DNA of 52,563 bases, from contig NC_068984.1 of assembly GCF_001194135.2 (NCBI RefSeq), positions 129,362,537-129,415,099 on the forward strand, given 5' to 3'. The position numbers and the translations under genes are program-made. The notes beneath the pieces are model-generated. The model was not told the DNA's origin. It worked only from the letters and a program-made list of their open reading frames with translations, and searched no databases. Origin of the DNA: Octopus bimaculoides. Lineage: Eukaryota. Each line of letters starts with the position of its first letter. Within the stretch, counting starts at the first letter, position 1. Positions 4,935 through 52,563 of this stretch are shown in pieces.

Positions 4935-5565
4935 CCTTTCTTCTATAGATACAATGCCTGAAATTTTAAGGAGGCGGTTAGTTGATAACATCAACCCCAG
5001 TGTTCAACTAGTACTAATTTCATTGACCCTGAAAGGATGAAAGACGAAGTTGACCTCAGTGGAATTTGAATTCAGAACATAAAACCGGAAGCAATACTGC
5101 TAAGCATTTTCCCTGTCTTCCTAAATTAATAATAATAATGGTTTNNNNNNNNNNTTCCCTGTCTTCCTAAATTAATAATAATAATGGTTTCAAATTTAGG
5201 CACAAGGCTAGCAACTCCAGGGGTGGAGGTAAGTCAAGTAAATTAACCCCAGTGCTCAACTGGCAGTTATTTTATCAATCCCAAAAGGATGAAAGGTAAA
5301 GTTGACCTCAGCAGCATTTGAACTCAGAATGAAAAGACAAATGAAATGATGTAAAGCATTTTGCCCAGCACGCTAACAATTCTGCCAGATCACTGCCTTC
5401 TTAATAATACTGACCCAGTACATAACTGGTACTAATGTGATCGACCCCAAAAGGAAGAAAGGCAAAGTCGACCTCGGCAGAATTTGAACTCAGAACAATA
5501 AGCAGGAAGAAATGTTGCTAAGCATTTTTCCAGCATGGTAACAATTCTGCCAGCTTGTTGCCTTC
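4935..5565 (-). mobile_element. Cluster of three same-orientation family B SINE copies separated by (AAT)n
   Basis: Three repeats of accccag...gaaaggatgaaaggcaaagtcgacctc...gaatttgaactcagaac. Confidence 0.8.
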
Positions 5566-5639
5566 TTAATGATACAAGAGGAAGTCAGAAATTATCCACA
5601 CTTTTGCCATGACATATCTTTATTATTGTCACACTGCTT

Positions 5640-6045
5640 TCTTTGCATGCGTGCTTATAGTTGGTACTATTGTGGTCACATGATCAAAGTTTGATCCTTA
5701 CTATAGCATTTTTCTTTCTGGCTTTACAATGTAAGCATGGCCACTCCACGAGCAATATGCACCAAAGAAGGACAAAGAGCAGTGATCCGAGAGATGATAA
5801 TGGTTAACCAGTTCACCATCACCATCTCTCTAGATTGCCGAATCTTCTCATCAATGGGCATCCTCCTCCCTCTTTGTGCATCATGCTTGTCCGGCCATTT
5901 TAAACTTCTCAATTCACTCATACACACTTCTACACAGTAGTGCACTGTCTGTCTATCGTGCTAAAAGCCCTTGATCAACTTCAACATCTGACACACCTTC
6001 TGACCAGAGAAGTTGAATCACTGCTCTTTGATCTTCTTTTGACTT
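5640..6045. mobile_element. Rearranged mariner transposase 5' remnant with internal inversion
   Basis: Plus strand reads MATPRAICTKEGQRAVIR. Minus strand reads KEDQRAVIQLLWSEGVSDVEV..RSVYE*IEKFK, then GRTSMMHKEG, then DEKIRQSREMVMVN; this is typical of a mariner N-terminal HTH region. Confidence 0.7.
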
Positions 6046-11964: not shown

Positions 11965-12157
11965 CTACTGAGGAGAAGTAGGTTGCAAAGATGTTGGGAT
12001 AATTTGTGGAGTTTTAAACTTTGGTAAACATAGACCAAATTTTGATTCCAGACCGTCAAATGTTGCAAGTGCTAAACGATAACCGCCAATGTGATCAGGA
12101 TTTCTTGACATCTTTTCTTCAAGGGATGTTGGCCGTGCCTCTGATCCTTCAGGTCGC
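11965..12157 (-). CDS. SLC25A12/SLC25A13: Aralar/citrin terminal coding exon, C-terminal regulatory domain ([63 protein letters not shown])
   Basis: Acceptor catttttcttcAG, phase 2 start, TAG at 11967-11965; [11 protein letters not shown]...KFGL.LP motif. Not present in the ORF track. Confidence 0.95.
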
Positions 12158-17130: not shown

Positions 17131-17484
17131 NNNNNNNNNNNNNNNNNNNNNNNNNNNNNNNNNNNNNNNNNNNNNNNNNNNNNNNNNNNNNNNNNNNNNN
17201 TATATATATATATATATATTGTTTGTTTGTTTATTCATGTTTTTAACATCAATTTTTCCAAGCTAACATAGGTTAGACAGGGATATATTTGAGGTAGGAT
17301 TTAATACCTAGATGCTCTTCTTGTCATCAAAACTTACCTGCTTTTTAAATAAGGGATTTTTTAAAAATATTCTACACATCTTTGAAAGCACAGACCAACT
17401 GATCATAATGTCATCAAGGAATATAAACATCATTCACTGTTTCACTCAAGCATAACTGTGGGGTGTCAACAATGGAGCACAGTG

Positions 17485-21200: not shown

Positions 21201-23778
21201 CGGAATGAATCCAAATGAACAAAATACCCATTTTCTATAATGATATTTAGTCCCTTCATATACATTATTACTGTATACAGTGATAACCTAATGAGTGCAC
21301 TAATTAAGAACTCATTAGCAATACACTCCTATAGACATACTGACATGGATGTACAAGTATAGTTAGTGGAACCAATGGATGGGAAAAAGGTATACATGAT
21401 CGATGCTTCGATCATGCCCAATGCACTGGACAAGATAACAACATGAGCAGGTGCCAACCCATCCCAGGCCATCCCTGGTTACCAAGCTGAAGGTTATGGA
21501 CAACTTAAAAATGCATTGGTGAAAGTAAAATTCTGCAACCTGGATGCCACAAAGCTGGAAGTAGGACTAGGAAACCAAAGTTAGAAGGGATGGAAATAGT
21601 TTGAAAATTACTATTTCTGTTAGAAAGAGTTCCCTTTCTCATGTGAAGAGGATACCTCATTAGATATTTGTAGGAAATGCAATGTATGGAATGAATGCAG
21701 AAATAAGAAATTCAAAGTTTATACAATGAATGGAGAAGAACAAGTACAGTATGATTCATGGGATTTGCAGTATTACCATACATGAAACAAGGAAATTGCA
21801 GCAAAGCTGCGTGATAATGGTATCAGACATGACATGCAGACTCTTCATATAACTTGTTTGACATTGTGTTTGTATTCTTTTCTTCCATTTTAATTTGACA
21901 TGTACATTGTTTTTATTCTTCTCTTCCGTTTTACAAATTCGGTTCATACATCTCTTTCCGGTTCCCACTCAAAACTGTTTACTGATCACAGCCATCTCAC
22001 AGATCTGTGGTTATGAGGAGTGCTTCACACTCCAATGGTTATGAAAAAAATGAGTAGAAACGTGTCAATAAAGTGACTGGGTAACACAGGTGTTGACAGC
22101 TGACTGCTTTTGTTTGAACACATCATGTGAAAAAAATGATTGCTGTTGGGAGAGAAAGCGGTTTGAGTTGCTGATGGATAGTATCCATAGAAGAGAAAAT
22201 ATTAAGAATATTGATATAAGAGATAAAGCATGATTGAGCCACAAAGAAAATGTCATATTACAGATCCACCCAACAGGTAAAACCCACATGTAACAGTCAT
22301 TGAAGGAGACTCACTATCTCAAATGTAAAAACAGTAACTTATAGTTGAGCATATTTAATAATCCTTATAGAATCAACAGTTACTCAGAGCTGGGATATTT
22401 CTTGGTTGCTTTATTGTTTTAGCAATGTTCAGAATATGAAGTTTCCATGAGGAGAGTGAAACATTTTTGTACCAATGTTTTGGCACCACCAATTTAGCAT
22501 CACTGATTTGATACTGACTTACTTGGCATCAGATATTTTAATGTTTCTCTCTTTCTCTACCTCCCACCCATCCTCTCTCTCTGTTTATATGGTGAGCATA
22601 TTTCTCTTTATGTGTTGTGTATGAGGAGAGGAAACATGCTCATGTATATTGTAAAAGTCTCTCTATCTCCCTTTTTACATGTATGTGTACATTTTTGCAT
22701 TCATGTGCATGTGTATTGGCCTCCAGTACCAAAAATGCTGTCATCAAAACAAGCTGAATATCCAGTTAGCCATGCCAAACCACCAGCATCAAAATAGCCA
22801 TGCCAAATTGTATTATTCCACTTCAAGAGGTTGCTGGAGGTAATAAAGTCAAAACTTTTTAGGATATCTTTTAAGTTTGGAGTTATTGATGAAAAATTAT
22901 ACAGTGATGCGGTAGCTCTTTCTTTAAATAAATACTCTTCACAGTCTGGTCTGAAAGTATGCTGTTAAAATAGAGGACATCTAGTGGAAGACATTATAAA
23001 TTATGAGAGCTGTATGATGATCCTTGTGGGACACCTAAGCTGATTCAGAATTGAGAAGTACCAGTGCTGAGAAGGGATGTGATTGAGTCAGATTCACATG
23101 ATTAGATCTATATATATTTAATAGGAAAGGAATTGAACCAAGTAATTGCAATGCCACATGTTTTCAAAGACATTGCTACGTGTAACAGGTTTATTTTTAA
23201 ATGGTTTTCTAAAGCCAGAGAGAGACTATTTGTTGAAAACAACATTAATATATTAGTTTTGAATTCATTACAAATATGAGGTGCTTGTGACTGATATGCT
23301 AGCTTAAAGATATCTAATAATAGTATTTAGTATTAATTTGCAGACAAAATATTGCAGTGTAGATTACAAAAACAATATCTCCATTTGAAAACATCTAATC
23401 TCTGGAGAATGTCCTGATGTCCTTTAAGCTTACATTAAACTTATAAGTAAAAAGTTAAACTTTTCCATTAAACTATAAAACAAGTGTCCAAGAAACAACA
23501 GTGTTTTCTTAAAATATGTTAAATAAATTAATTCATATAGAACAAAAATAATTAGAAAACAATTTTATATTAATACAATAGTGTTGCAACTAAATAAAAA
23601 CACTGTAGCTGGATGTTGAAGAAGCAACATAAAAAGAAAAAAATCAAAAGCAAAACTGAAAGAAAAAAAAACTAACACACTGTTTGTAATAAATGTTGCA
23701 AAGAGGCTGCAAAAATTGCTTTTAGGAATAAAGAGAAAGAGAAACATAGAAGTAAAGAGGGGAATTAGCTGCAATTAC

Positions 23779-23802
23779 TTGAATGGCAATCTTGTTTTAG
23801 AC
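23779..23802 (-). CDS. Candidate 24-nt alternative microexon or alternative terminal exon of aralar (adds SKTRLPFK)
   Basis: Acceptor ttattccgttttcttcgcAG, donor GTaatt; phase 2 to 2 and stop-free, matching the phase-2 host intron. No transcript evidence. Confidence 0.5.
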
Positions 23803-25394
23803 CTGCGAAGAAAACGGAATAAGTATTTATCAGAGTATGGTAAAAGTACAATTCGGAATTGAGTGTCCAAAAACATTGTCTCTTCAATGCATTGATTAAC
23901 CTTACTGATTTAAGATTTCTCATCTGTTTACTTTCTAATATTGGAATATAAATATTCGTTACATTTGCTGAAATGTAAATCTTATTAAAGAAAGATGTTA
24001 CGATGTTATTGTTTTAAAAATTTATTTCTGATGATTCTTGAAAAGAAAACAAAATCTAATTACTCATTTTTAATTTAATATCAATTTAATATCAAAAGAT
24101 AATAGTCAAAGTAATTAACTGGTGATTAGCTGGTAGATTCTAAACATTAAGTAGGAGCCGCAAAAAGAAAATATTTTAAAATAACAAGATACCAACAATG
24201 GCTTACTGGCAATTATTTTCAACACAGCCTTGTCTACACTCATCAATATCTAATACAGAAGGAATTGCAATGGCTGAGCAGAGCCAAGAAGAGCCAAGAC
24301 CTTGTATTCTGTAACTGGTATTGTGCCAGTTACAGGATACTGTCTTACCACCTTACTTTACAATATTTCAAAGACTTCAGACACGTTAGGTGAGAGTAGA
24401 ACAGGTAAGATAACAGAACAACTTAGATTGACAAACTGGCTGGAATATAACCAAAAGGTTCTGCTAATTCATTGTGCATGATCAAATCTCACAAGAGAAT
24501 GAAGTAACACCTTTTAATTAGAATCCTATTTTCTTTCACATACAGTTTACAATGATCCAGCCTACTACACTTTTTCATCACCACTTCAGTACTTAGTAAC
24601 TGAATCATAAATACAAACTTCACAGAGGTCGATAGAGATAGAAATTAAAAGCTAAGACTATAATAAAAATTACATATTACATAACAAAACATCCATATAT
24701 TATTTTTATCATCACACTTGACAATATTTCAATATCTTTTCCAAACTACAAAATCATCTTCTGACCAATAATTTTCAATTTGCTTTTACTTCAAGAAAAC
24801 AAACAGAAATATATGGGAACATTAAATCACTTGCCAAAATTTGGTAATTGTGGTAAACTTAAAACAAGCTCCTTTAATTTAAGTCTTCTATATTCTAAAA
24901 ATCCTATGCTAAGCCTTGATCTATACCTAATTTTTACTCATCACTGGTCTTTCACAAATCATTCACTGTAAATTTCCAATATTATTCAAAGAACATGAGC
25001 CTTGGCTTAAATTTCTGTAGGTTACACACCTTGTAGAAATTTCATACAGACATATATTCAAAAATAAGCCACTATAGTTGAAGATAGCTTCAAAATAATA
25101 TTCGTTATAGAGTGAACATGTTTTAAAGAAACAAAATTATTGTAATTAATTAAATGTAAATAAATCTTGACTTCAGAATACACTTGGAATTAGTAATCAA
25201 TATTAACATACTAATCCATATAGCTGATGAAATTAAAGGATTAAAAATAAATTATTTCAATTTTTTGCAAGATTAAAACTTCCTTTCTAAACTCTAGTGA
25301 TATCAAGTATACAAAATTTGCAGGAACGATTACTGTTGACAATTAATTAAATCAGGTTTCCAGTTTTGACCTTTAATTAGTTTCATTAGTTCAT

Positions 25395-27132: not shown

Positions 27133-27270
<138 letters not shown>

Positions 27271-28543: not shown

Positions 28544-29589
28544 CTATAGTCAATAAAAAATGTTATATTTATAGTCATAAAAATTAAACCTTAAACTTAA
28601 ATTTAAAAAATGAGATACTACCCAGTGCACCACTTATGACAATTTAAAAAAAACCCACTGTATTGTTCCAAAATTTCACGTCTGTGAAATTCGGAGAGAA
28701 ATGCAAGAAACATAACTAGTGTTCTTTTGTTTTAATATAGAAAATGTTTCAAAAAGATGGCAGCTCATCTCTTTGGTGTTTTGGTAAAAGAATTTTATTT
28801 TACGAATACCAAGGAAATGAACCACCTGCTTATTGAGTCACTTAAATATTAAAGCATAATATTATGCTTTAATGTACAAGCATGATGTGATGTGATGTGG
28901 CTTGGAATCTCTATTTTCCAATGAGATGTTTGAATTCGCAGAACATAGAATATACAAATATTGATGTTTAATGTGTTCACTTAGGTATCATCGTTCGTAT
29001 AGCGATACTAATAAGCAGGTGTCAGAACTAAACATATACACTATTCCGAAAAGAGAGGTAATCAAGTACAGAGCATAAGAAATTGAATAAATGACAAAGG
29101 AACAAGAAGAGCATCACCCATGATCTTTTTCAAGGATTCTGAGTCTAGCAGGATGAAGAAAGCTATCCTCAGGCAATCCCTCTGGTTTGAATACTTGCCA
29201 CAGAGTGTACTTTGCTAAAGACATCCAGAGGCCAGTTGGTAAGGCTTAAAAATTTAAGAGGAAAATTTTAGCTAAGTTCATAATTTATCAATGGTACTAT
29301 GCTTTAAAAAGGTGTGTGTGTATGTGTGTCTGTGTGTGCACGTGTGTGTGTNNNNNNNNNNNNNNNNNNNNNNNNNNNNNNNNNNNNNNNNNNNNNNNNN
29401 NNNNNNNNNNNNNNNNNGGGGTAATGGAAATCAATTGTCTGTTCCCTGAGTTAAAATTAGACAGAAACTAATTGAAATGTGTCGAATAGAAATGAGGACA
29501 CGCCAACAGAAAAATGTTGATGTTATCCATTTTAAACAGAACTTTTATTTTACATATTCTTCAAATCTGCATGTGTCCATTCTTTACCA

Positions 29590-36191: not shown

Positions 36192-37081
36192 NNNNNNNNN
36201 NNNNNNNNNNNNNNNNNNNNNNNNNNNNNNNNNNNNNNNNNNNNNNNNNNNNNNNNNNNNNNNNNNNNNNNNNNNNNNNNNNNNNNNNNNNNNNNNNNNN
36301 NNNNNNNNNNNNNNNNNNNNNNNNNNNNNNNNNNNNNNNNNNNNNNNNNNNNNNNNNNNNNNNNNNNNNNNNNNNNNNNNNNNNNNNNNNNNNNNNNNNN
36401 NNNNNNNNNNNNNNNNNNNNNNNNNNNNNNNNNNNNNNNNNNNNNNNNNNNNNNNNNNNNNNNNNNNNNNNNNNNNNNNNNNNNNNNNNNNNNNNNNNNN
36501 NNNNNNNNNNNNNNNNNNNNNNNNNNNNNNNNNNNNNNNNNNNNNNNNNNNNNNNNNNNNNNNNNNNNNNNNNNNNNNNNNNNNNNNNNNNNNNNNNNNN
36601 NNNNNNNNNNNNNNNNNNNNNNNNNNNNNNNNNNNNNNNNNNNNNNNNNNNNNNNNNNNNNNNNNNNNNNNNNNNNNNNNNNNNNNNNNNNNNNNNNNNN
36701 NNNNNNNNNNNNNNNNNNNNNNNNNNNNNNNNNNNNNNNNNNNNNNNNNNNNNNNNNNNNNNNNNNNNNNNNNNNNNNNNNNNNNNNNNNNNNNNNNNNN
36801 NNNNNNNNNNNNNNNNNNNNNNNNNNNNNNNNNNNNNNNNNNNNNNNNNNNNNNNNNNNNNNNNNNNNNNNNNNNNNNNNNNNNNNNNNNNNNNNNNNNN
36901 NNNNNNNNNNNNNNNNNNNNNNNNNNNNNNNNNNNNNNNNNNNNNNNNNNNNNNNNNNNNNNNNNNNNNNNNNNNNNNNNNNNNNNNNNNNNNNNNNNNN
37001 NNNNNNNNNNNNNNNNNNNNNNNNNNNNNNNNNNNNNNNNNNNNNNNNNNNNNNNNNNNNNNNNNNNNNNNNNNNNNNNNN
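36192..37081. other. Assembly gap (N run, 890 nt)
   Basis: Direct observation; other gaps at 17131-17200 and 29352-29417, plus several 10-nt gaps. Confidence 0.99.
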
Positions 37082-45727: not shown

Positions 45728-46688
45728 ACTATGATGAATAAAAGGGGACTATGTATAGAAAATGTGTAAAGTTAAACAGAAAAAAAAACTCCTGATCTCA
45801 ACTGATACAAAAAAAAAAAAAAACTTGAATTTGTGAATGTGTGGAGCTGTTTTTAAGCTTGCGATATATATATATATAATCTTATAAAGCTGTTTATATA
45901 ACCAGAGAATATCAAATGGTAAGTTGTAATCAATAAAAGTATTTGATATTTTATTCATTTGTTACAGCAAATTCTATTCTACTAATTATCATGAGACAGG
46001 TTATTTAATTTATTATTTATGGCCTAATAGTAAAGAAAATGATCCAAACTTTATAATTAGTTATGTTTTATGAAAATATCTTTCAGAGAGCAGCACACAG
46101 TATCACTTGTATGGATATGGACATTAAATAGAGATACACAAATGATTTACAAATGAGGGAACAATGATACAATAAATGTCTTCTAATGATGCTACAACAT
46201 AGTTTAGAGTATTCTTTCTATTGTAATTCACTAACAAAAAAAAATGATATTGGTTTTCTAGCTAGCATGGAGTAAACTACAACACACACACACATGAAAA
46301 AAGTAAACACAACTGATTTTTCTAAATATGGTATCAGCAATACTAATTAAGAGAAATACCCATTAACATGAAACACAGAGTATTTGCTTTTAGGGAGAGG
46401 GAAAAACCTTGGGTATCTTTCAAGCTGGCAGGCGAATCTGAAGTGAATTTTAAAAAAATATACAACACCAAATATCACCAAAATAAAATTATAATGTCTC
46501 ACCCAAAACTTCTTCTAACGCTGAAACAAAAACATGACAAAAAAAAAAAAAAAAAGACAAATAACTTTGTGCAATTATTCCTTAAGAACAAAAATAAAAA
46601 AAATCAAGCATTAATGTTTCAATAAGCTAATCAGTAAATGAATACTAATTAAAATGATATTTTTAAAGTATATTCATATAATCTAGAC

Positions 46689-49196: not shown

Positions 49197-49293
49197 CCAG
49201 TTTGTTGTCGAAGACCAGCTAACTGGAAAAGGATGTCAACTTCCATTGGAGTAAGTTGGGCAGCAAAGTCCTGGGCTTGGTATAGTAATTCCT
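49197..49293 (-). CDS. SLC25A12/SLC25A13: Aralar/citrin exon (EELLYQAQDFAAQLTPMEVDILFQLAGLRQQTG); approx. exon 8
   Basis: Acceptor ttattatAG, donor GTgagt; 97 nt, phase 1 to 2; TPMEVDILFQLA motif. Not present in the ORF track. Confidence 0.95.
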
Positions 49294-49419
49294 CTATAAT
49301 AAAGTGTCAAAGCATTTGTCAAGAGAGAGGTGAAAGGGAAGGGTAGATAAAGATAGGAAATGAAAGGTAAAAAAATAAAAACCAAAATAGTGTATAAAAA
49401 ACAAAGAATACAGAGAGAG

Positions 49420-49522
49420 AAAGAGAGAGGGGGGTAGAGTGATAGTGAATAAAGCGAGTGACAAGAAGAGACAGACAGAGCGACAGGGATGAATAGATGG
49501 ATGAAGAGAGAGGGGGAGAGAA

Positions 49523-49553
<31 letters not shown>

Positions 49554-49617
49554 AAGAGAGAGAGAGAAAGAGAGAGAGAGAGANNNNNNNNNNAGAGAGA
49601 GAAAGAGAGAGAGAGAA

Positions 49618-49648
<31 letters not shown>

Positions 49649-49860
49649 AAGAGAGAGAGAAGGCGAGAGAGAGAAAGAGAGTGAGAAAGAGAGAGAGAAA
49701 GAAAGAGAGAGAGAAAGAAAGAAAGAGAGAGAGAAAGAAAGAGAGAGAGAGAGAGAGAGAAAGAAAGAGAGAGAGAAAGAAAGAGAGAGAAAGAAAGAGA
49801 AAGAGAGAGAGAGAGTGAGTGTGTGTGTGTGTGTGCGTGTGCATGAGTTTGTGTGTGTGT
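49420..49860. repeat. Compound (GA)n/(GAAA)n microsatellite followed by (TG)n
   Basis: Direct observation; contains a 10-N gap. Confidence 0.95.
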
Positions 49861-50216
49861 ATGTGCACTGAATGAGAAAGAGCAGTGAGACAGAGTGAGA
49901 TGGAGAGAATAGAGAGATACACTGAGCACTGGAAAGACAAGCAGGAAAGAGAGATATTAAATACATAGACATGCACATATCATAATTTAATATGTTAAAA
50001 TGGTTGGTATCAGGAAGGGTATTCAGCCACATAAAAACCAAGCTAAACATGAAACCTACAAGTGAGATGTGGCTCCCCAAAACCTATCCAGAAATGTAGG
50101 AACTACCATCTAACTCATGCCACCAAAGAAAGTAGATATAAAACAATAATGAGTATACATATAAATAAATGTTCAAGGGTGTGGGTGTGTGTGTGTGTGT
50201 GTGTATGTGTACATAT

Positions 50217-51979: not shown

Positions 51980-52121
51980 CTTTTGTTACTTCTCGGGTGA
52001 AATCCTTTTGAGAAGCGGCAAGATAAACTTTCTTGACAAGTTCCATATTATTCAACAAGGAAATAAAGGCAATGAAGTAGGTGTAGCTCACTTGGCGGTG
52101 GCGTTCACCTCCTAAGGTGAC
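51980..52121 (-). CDS. SLC25A12/SLC25A13: Aralar/citrin exon, EF-hand regulatory domain ([47 protein letters not shown]); approx. human SLC25A13 exon 7
   Basis: Acceptor ctttgcAG, donor GTtggt; 142 nt, phase 0 to 1; SLLNNMEL motif. Confidence 0.95.
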
Positions 52122-52242
52122 CTGCAAAGTAAACAAGAATAAGGCAGTTAATGGTAGTAACACTTACATGCGAAGTAATCTATAGTATGAATGATGAACA
52201 AATCATTAATGGTTATGTTCACCTGCTATAATAAACTATATG

Positions 52243-52563
52243 TTGGCACTTTGTCGGTTACGATGACGAGGGTTCCAGTTGATCCGATCAATGGAACAGC
52301 TTGCTCATGAAATTAACGTGCAAGTGGCTGAGCACTCCACAGACACGTGTACCCCTAACGTAGTTCTCGGGGATATTCAGCGTGACACAGTGTGATAAGG
52401 CTGGCCCTTTGAAATACAGGTACAACAGAAACAGGAAGTAAGAGTGAGAGAAAGTTGTGGTGGAAGAGTAAAGCAGGGTTCGCCACCATCCCCTGCTGGA
52501 GCCTCGTGGAGCTTTTAGGTGTTTTCGCTCAATAAACACTCACAACGCCCTGTCTGGGCATCG
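52243..52563 (-). mobile_element. Family C SINE, second copy (head runs off the window)
   Basis: Colinear with 50217-50530 with few substitutions. Confidence 0.85.

Follow-up and report, generated by a model that had tools for sequence, protein, structure and literature searches.

A probable 24-nt cassette microexon within the final intron of aralar from Octopus bimaculoides

INTRODUCTION

Aralar and citrin are Ca2+-binding mitochondrial aspartate/glutamate carriers of the SLC25A12/13 type that end in a C-terminal domain bearing an amphipathic helix. In citrin, this domain comprises residues 613-675 (PMC11539162), and the helix is held on EF-hands 1-2 through the residues Pro634, Asp635, His636, Gly639, and Tyr640 of the NPDHxGGY motif (PMC4250520). 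The connection between carrier domain and C-terminal helix is structurally undefined in aralar/citrin (PMC11539162). Here, we analyzed a stretch of 52,563 nucleotides (nt) from Octopus bimaculoides (from here on, the window), which carries aralar exons on its minus strand. In the last intron of this gene, a first-pass annotation made from the letters of the window had proposed a 24-nt microexon that preserves the reading frame or, alternatively, serves as a last exon. We report that this 24-nt unit is most probably an alternatively spliced cassette microexon and that inclusion and skipping products both exist as gene models.

For exons of this size, the neural microexons that depend on SRRM3/4 (eMIC) provide a second point of comparison. 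About 75-79% of the SRRM3/4-dependent microexons have a UGC between the branch point and the AG, and this motif is frequent but not strictly required (bioRxiv 10.1101/2024.09.17.613571).

RESULTS

The unit lies between splice sites in the last aralar intron and keeps the host frame

Every base of the window matches O. bimaculoides CM046604.1 (GCA_001194135.2) at ~129.37-129.45 Mb, and the 78.9-kb gene locus (L006) was taken via XP_052823639.1. Exact spliced mapping of this protein onto L006 gave the coding exon boundaries. The gene codes for an N-terminal domain with EF-hands, three Mito_carr repeats, and a C-terminal helix carrying the NPDH anchor; the precomputed Pfam families are PF13499 and PF00153 for models that are 98-100% identical to the window's exons. 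The unit and the two coding exons that flank its host intron are as follows, where P0242 is one of the public protein models described below.

27134..27224, minus strand: next-to-last coding exon of 91 nt; final part of carrier helix H6, then (R)
23779..23802, minus strand: probable cassette microexon, 24 nt; codes (R)SKTRLPFK, corresponding to residues 510-517 of P0242
11965..12157, minus strand: last coding exon, 193 nt including the stop codon; RPEGSE onward, C-terminal domain with the amphipathic helix

The host intron, which is the last of the gene, has a length of 14,976 nt and is in phase 2 because the codon is split after its second base (AG|G). At the boundary at 27134, GACTTTGGAGGAAG is followed by gtaaga (AAG, then gtaaga), and at the boundary at 12157, tttttcttcag is followed by GCGACCTGAAGGATCAGAG. 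A direct reading of the window places the 24 nt at 23802..23779 on the minus strand between an AG and a GT site. Around the unit, this strand reads ttccgttttcttcgcAG, then GTCTAAAACAAGATTGCCATTCAA, then GTaatt; continued further downstream, it reads ttattccgttttcttcgcAG, then GTCTAAAACAAGATTGCCATTCAA, then GTaattgc; and positions 23830-23771 read ataaatacttattccgttttcttcgcAG, then GTCTAAAACAAGATTGCCATTCAA, then GTaattgc.

As microexons, we considered units of ≤27 nt (at most 51) with a length that is a multiple of 3 and a sequence that is open in the host phase. The 24-nt unit is of this type: It is in phase 2 on both sides, contains no stop codon, and keeps the host frame. With the unit included, the codons are AG|G TCT AAA ACA AGA TTG CCA TTC AA|G CGA, giving GGR-SKTRLPFK-RPEGSE. 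If the donor is ignored, AAG TAA is read and the product ends as ...LPFK*, with the open reading frame (ORF) ending at 23778 and the in-frame TAA at 23777-23775. The phase 2-to-2 unit with AG/GT ends is, therefore, present in the letters exactly as the first-pass annotation described it, and the immediate TAA that it reported for read-through agrees with the ORF list, which stops at 23778.

The splice signals of the unit are poorly explained by chance

The signals around the unit, together with a downstream AATAAA discussed below, are as follows.

23803..23880, minus strand: AG-free zone of 77 nt upstream of the microexon acceptor
23803..23822, minus strand: 3' splice site; pyrimidine tract ttattccgttttcttcg, then cAG
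23770..23778, minus strand: weak 5' splice site; CAA|GTAATT, without G at -1 and without G at +5
23724..23764, minus strand: CU-rich tract cccctctttacttctatgtttctctttctctttattcc, ~+15 to +55 past the microexon donor
23190..23195, minus strand: AATAAA, 585 nt downstream; probably not a used poly(A) signal

We scored each frame-preserving, stop-free AG..GT unit of 3-60 nt in the host intron using a generic metazoan donor/acceptor matrix, with values that follow the consensus and the intron's own composition as the background. The unit ranked first among 439 candidates, and no other candidate equaled both of its site scores. Simulating the intron 300 times with a first-order Markov model gave, per intron, an expected 0.01 units at least as good on both scores and 0.10 on the summed score. 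Moreover, ~210 kb of control octopus DNA (both strands of L006 and the plus strand of the window, three phases each) contained no further unit reaching both scores. Chance alone poorly explains the splice signal of the unit, and this observation is statistically sound.

With 14.3 bits, the acceptor is second best when compared to the 12 acceptors of the gene in the window (3.1-14.6 bits), while the donor, with 3.5 bits, is second weakest when compared to the real donors of the gene (1.6-13.3 bits); both scores fall inside the range of the gene's real sites. The unit is, in summary, frame-preserving with canonical AG/GT ends, a very good acceptor, and a weak donor. Among the AG-to-AG gaps in the intron, 26/781 are at least 76 nt long, placing the AG-free zone in the top 3.3%. 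Within this zone, a branch-point-like CTGAT is located at 23833-23829 with its A at 23830, i.e. 28 nt from the exon (CT[AG]A[CT] match at -31). UGC is absent within 86 nt upstream of the microexon AG, the nearest TGC being at -89, and GCAUG was not found near the microexon. Downstream of the donor, a 40-nt window in the CU-rich tract is 90% pyrimidine, a level that is reached by 0.2% of the intron's 40-nt windows. This tract is a candidate for an intronic regulatory element, of either the PTB or the TIA type.

Two further ideas about the unit were given up. The first-pass annotation had pointed to two CpGs next to the unit in an otherwise CpG-poor intron. The intron is indeed CpG-poor (observed/expected ratio of 0.16), but the pair is not special: Six pairs among the 57 intron CpGs lie within 20 nt of each other, and we dropped the pair as a sign of function. 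An origin of the microexon as an exonized repeat is unsupported, as no second copy was found within the window.

Public gene models include and skip the unit

The assembled C-terminal half of the protein, used as a query, matched A0A0L8HTP6 (P0121) with 98% identity over its full length (100%), and the 2% mismatch consists essentially of the eight inserted residues. The 90% cluster of this protein has four members. Two of the models include the unit, i.e. UniRef A0A0L8HTR0 (P0242; 580 residues) and XP_014769466.1 (P0243; "Aralar2-like", 464 residues), both with IDFGGRSKTRLPFKRPEGSE; two skip it, i.e. A0A0L8HTP6 (625 residues) and XP_052823639.1 (P0241; 635 residues), which belongs to the newer chromosome-level annotation, both with IDFGGRRPEGSE. 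The insert in the inclusion models is identical, residue for residue, to the translated unit. The inclusion product IDFGGR-SKTRLPFK-RPEGSE that the first-pass annotation had predicted is, thus, found both in the sequence and in two public protein models, with SKTRLPFK between GGR and RPEGSE, and its reading of the unit as a frame-preserving microexon stands.

The microexon has been annotated since about 2015, in the genome-paper annotation and an early RefSeq run, while a later RefSeq run omits it. The call made from sequence, therefore, rediscovers an annotated isoform and does not add a new element. Unless guided by alignments, ab initio predictors do not put an exon of 24 nt into a 15-kb intron; for this reason, the inclusion models likely rest on transcript alignments. 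Among the Logan data, no transcript-derived protein of this species turned up, and XP_014769466.1 has no encoding contig on record. Our literature search on microexons with aralar/SLC25A12/13 or octopus returned no paper on this exon. Splicing data from O. bimaculoides figure in a 2026 preprint.

The insert separates two conserved motifs at the start of the C-terminal domain

Our alignment covered molluscs, annelids, arthropods, and vertebrates with 123 aralar/citrin proteins. In 120 of these 123 proteins, 30-33 residues make up the segment from (I/V)DFGG to NPDHxGG. Of the other three, two are the inclusion models of octopus (+8) and one is a fish protein (+16). The latter, a hypothetical protein of Prochilodus magdalenae (P0236), has the 16-residue insertion GQDFHRTTTEQVLFGY at the same exon junction, and this is probably a mis-model or annotation artefact. 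Because DFGG is invariant and (R/K)PxGSE nearly so in the alignment, the microexon splits two conserved motifs: SKTRLPFK, with a net charge of +3, is inserted between the DFGG(R) that follows H6 and the (R/K)PxGSE that opens the C-terminal domain.

Only the part encoded by the last exon (RPEGSE...KFKT) aligns to the structure of the citrin N-/C-terminal fusion (4P5W, chain 4p5w_A residues 351-399). Counting back from the motif, the insertion point lies ~20 residues before the NPDH anchor and no more than ~2 residues from where the C-terminal domain starts. The alignment to 4P5W and the citrin anchor residues confirm the first-pass placement of the insert upstream of the C-terminal helix. With the insert, the tether from H6 to NPDH increases from ~20 to ~28 residues and gains three positive charges. 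In an AlphaFold2 model of P0242 with a mean predicted local distance difference test score (pLDDT) of 66, H6 spans residues 477-502 and the insert (510-517) is in coil with a pLDDT of <50; the pLDDT of the entire C-terminal region 506-580 is <50, and the model is, therefore, silent on docking.

The insert appears to be lineage-specific

Deep conservation of the microexon was not observed. The 120 other aralar/citrin proteins lack the insert, and in the available sequences it appears lineage-specific. On two compact lophotrochozoan Logan contigs (L004 and L005, from runs ERR13868575 and ERR13986130), a 258-nt intron of the same phase lies between the H6 exon and the last exon. The gene on these contigs is compact, and its exons are ~78-87% identical to those of octopus. 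Because this identity resembles that of gastropod matches, the source of L004 and L005 is probably not a cephalopod. Contigs of a closer relative (L001-L003), in which the last exon is 77% identical in DNA, include 498 nt of the last intron only. Using blastn, the last octopus intron gave no intronic alignment to the Logan contigs L001-L005, which carry the last exon. A protein search with 688 residues of six-frame ORFs from ~500 nt on either side of the microexon gave no match at E ≤ 1, and a degenerate microexon pattern had 0 matches among metagenome contigs.

Other features of the locus and the window

The locus contains a second tiny coding exon of 18 nt, which codes VRRSFG and maps to 46503-46520 on the minus strand of the window (43295-43312 in L006). 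It is located between LRQQTG and RIRYEDLE and is present in 4/4 O. bimaculoides models. At this site, residues are absent from vertebrate proteins, whereas a gastropod carries a similarly sized insert.

On the gene strand, the window is bordered directly upstream of its position 52563 by an assembly gap of 2,467 nt (L006 34785-37251). Approximately 88 residues (EF-hands 3-5; residues 87-174 of P0126) have no match anywhere in the locus, and the old and new models bridge the gap by different, probably spurious peptides (PALSHCVTLNIPENYV versus another segment; window about 52110-52400). Because these EF-hand residues are unmatched and the bridging peptides differ, all public O. bimaculoides aralar models are probably incomplete.

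An aralar intron at window ~45771-44750 (minus strand) contains long retrotransposon-like ORFs (YADDLALLAES, followed by a cysteine-rich segment) that look like a remnant of a reverse transcriptase of the long interspersed nuclear element type. A recurring short element with the translation FHPFG(V/I)DKISTS is found at 46911-46819, 10504-10265, 7574-7485, 5372-5259, and 5099-5007 on the minus strand and is likely a dispersed octopus repeat resembling short interspersed nuclear elements. At window ~49240-50080, an intron contains simple repeats of the (TC)n/(AC)n type over about 800 nt, and N runs are present at 583-592, 5145-5154, 17131-17200, 29352-29417, 36192-37081, and 49584-49593. On L004, a gene with a weak Tim44-family match is located at 5602-6000 (minus) ~3.7 kb downstream of the aralar stop codon and on the opposite strand.

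DISCUSSION

Here, we describe a 24-nt unit in the last intron of O. bimaculoides aralar that is most probably an alternatively spliced cassette microexon. The inclusion form is probably minor, and inclusion may be rare given that the newer RefSeq model drops the exon. Several observations weigh against this reading. At the level of the signals, the donor lacks a G at both -1 and +5. At the level of annotation, the exon is absent from the newer RefSeq model, and the support for splicing comes indirectly from gene models that possibly all derive from one RNA-seq data set; the two inclusion annotations are not independent of each other, as they probably used the same RNA-seq. At the level of evolution, no homologue outside O. 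bimaculoides among the proteins aligned has an insert of the SKTRLPFK type, and the orthologous 258-nt intron of L004/L005 has no similarity to the microexon and, thus, gives no sign of long-term selective constraint. Finally, we know of no functional data on the linker from H6 to the helix in any species.

The main rival explanation is splicing noise, i.e. a real but non-functional cryptic exon in which a strong acceptor that arose by chance is paired with a weak donor; its low-level inclusion would have been caught by the transcript-based annotations of the 2015 era. Such noise would fit the donor score of 3.5 bits, the lack of a UGC motif and of a nearby GCAUG, the absence of the insert from every other surveyed homologue and of the exon from the newest RefSeq model, and the short intron of a distant lophotrochozoan. 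Yet, for this intron, each of three signals (acceptor, AG-free zone, and downstream CU tract) is unusual, and jointly they look organized; the frame is open and kept, and two annotation efforts retained the unit as a coding isoform. We, therefore, consider noise possible but rather unlikely. A coincidence without any exon, in which the database isoforms are prediction artefacts, could be argued from the indirect nature of the support for splicing. However, it would leave unexplained that the database insert is identical to the unit's translation and that the unit is the best of its intron and has no equal in control DNA; also, gene predictors rarely invent exons of this size unaided by alignments. 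We regard such a coincidence as very improbable.

The first-pass annotation also considered that the donor is skipped, that translation stops after LPFK, and that polyadenylation downstream yields a carrier without the C-terminal helix. The in-frame TAA and the AATAAA at 23195-23190 that this alternative last exon calls for are both present. However, the intron contains 20 copies of AATAAA (1.34 per kb), one within 600 nt is, therefore, expected by chance, and the motif, although present where it was reported, carries no weight as evidence for a terminal exon. Moreover, none of the public models ends in LPFK*, and the annotated isoforms continue to the normal last exon. With no such product and a poly(A) signal at background density, the alternative last exon is unsupported, and we give it almost no credence.

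If the unit is a cassette microexon, its inclusion would be regulated rather than constitutive. The weak donor would probably need help from flanking elements, e.g. the long AG-free zone upstream of the acceptor and, 15-55 nt past the donor, the CU-rich tract, and inclusion would depend on trans-acting factors, PTB- or TIA-like, that act via the weak donor and the flanking elements. In the protein, a longer basic tether would alter how far the C-terminal helix reaches toward its groove on EF-hands 1-2 or its effective concentration there; alternatively, the contact of the linker with the acidic intermembrane-space face of the inner membrane would change. That the unit is an octopod- or cephalopod-specific, tissue-regulated (e.g. 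neural) switch, which extends the tether by 40%, adds positive charge, and alters both helix docking on EF-hands 1-2 and the coupling between the regulatory and carrier parts, is a doubtful proposition to which we give little chance. If true, such a switch would change this coupling in the malate-aspartate shuttle of a lineage whose nervous system has a very high energy demand. The idea of Ca2+ tuning follows the 2014 citrin model (PMC4250520). In reconstitution experiments published in 2024, Ca2+ does not regulate citrin transport (PMC11539162), which weakens this idea and makes the functional inference weak; a role of the insert in Ca2+ tuning, as proposed in the first-pass annotation, is speculative.

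At present, the +8 form is an annotated, unstudied, and apparently lineage-specific isoform. As a natural isoform with eight additional tether residues and a higher positive charge, it would be a convenient probe of tether length in transport or regulation. The case also illustrates that a 24-nt exon was called correctly from sequence alone and could be verified against existing annotation.

With the SRRM3/4-dependent neural microexons, the octopus unit shares that it is a very short, frame-preserving cassette that brings charged residues into a surface linker. Its long upstream AG-free zone (77 nt) is also a feature reported for neural microexons (PMC12871342). In contrast to SRRM3/4-dependent microexons, it has no UGC between the branch point and the AG, its donor is weak, and in the available data it is not conserved outside the species. 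Because both the UGC motif and a nearby GCAUG are missing, the octopus microexon is, as far as its sequence goes, without the standard neural-microexon signature. The comparison with the human citrin/aralar C-terminal domain (PDB 4P5W; Thangaratnarajah et al. 2014) is closer: The octopus last exon codes the same domain, and its RPEGSE...NPDHIGGY aligns to the human KPMGSE...NPDHVGGY...KFGLYLPLFK. In the human and the other surveyed proteins, the linker from DFGG to NPDHxGG is of fixed length (30-33 residues), while the inclusion isoform of octopus carries eight additional residues at the very start of this linker.

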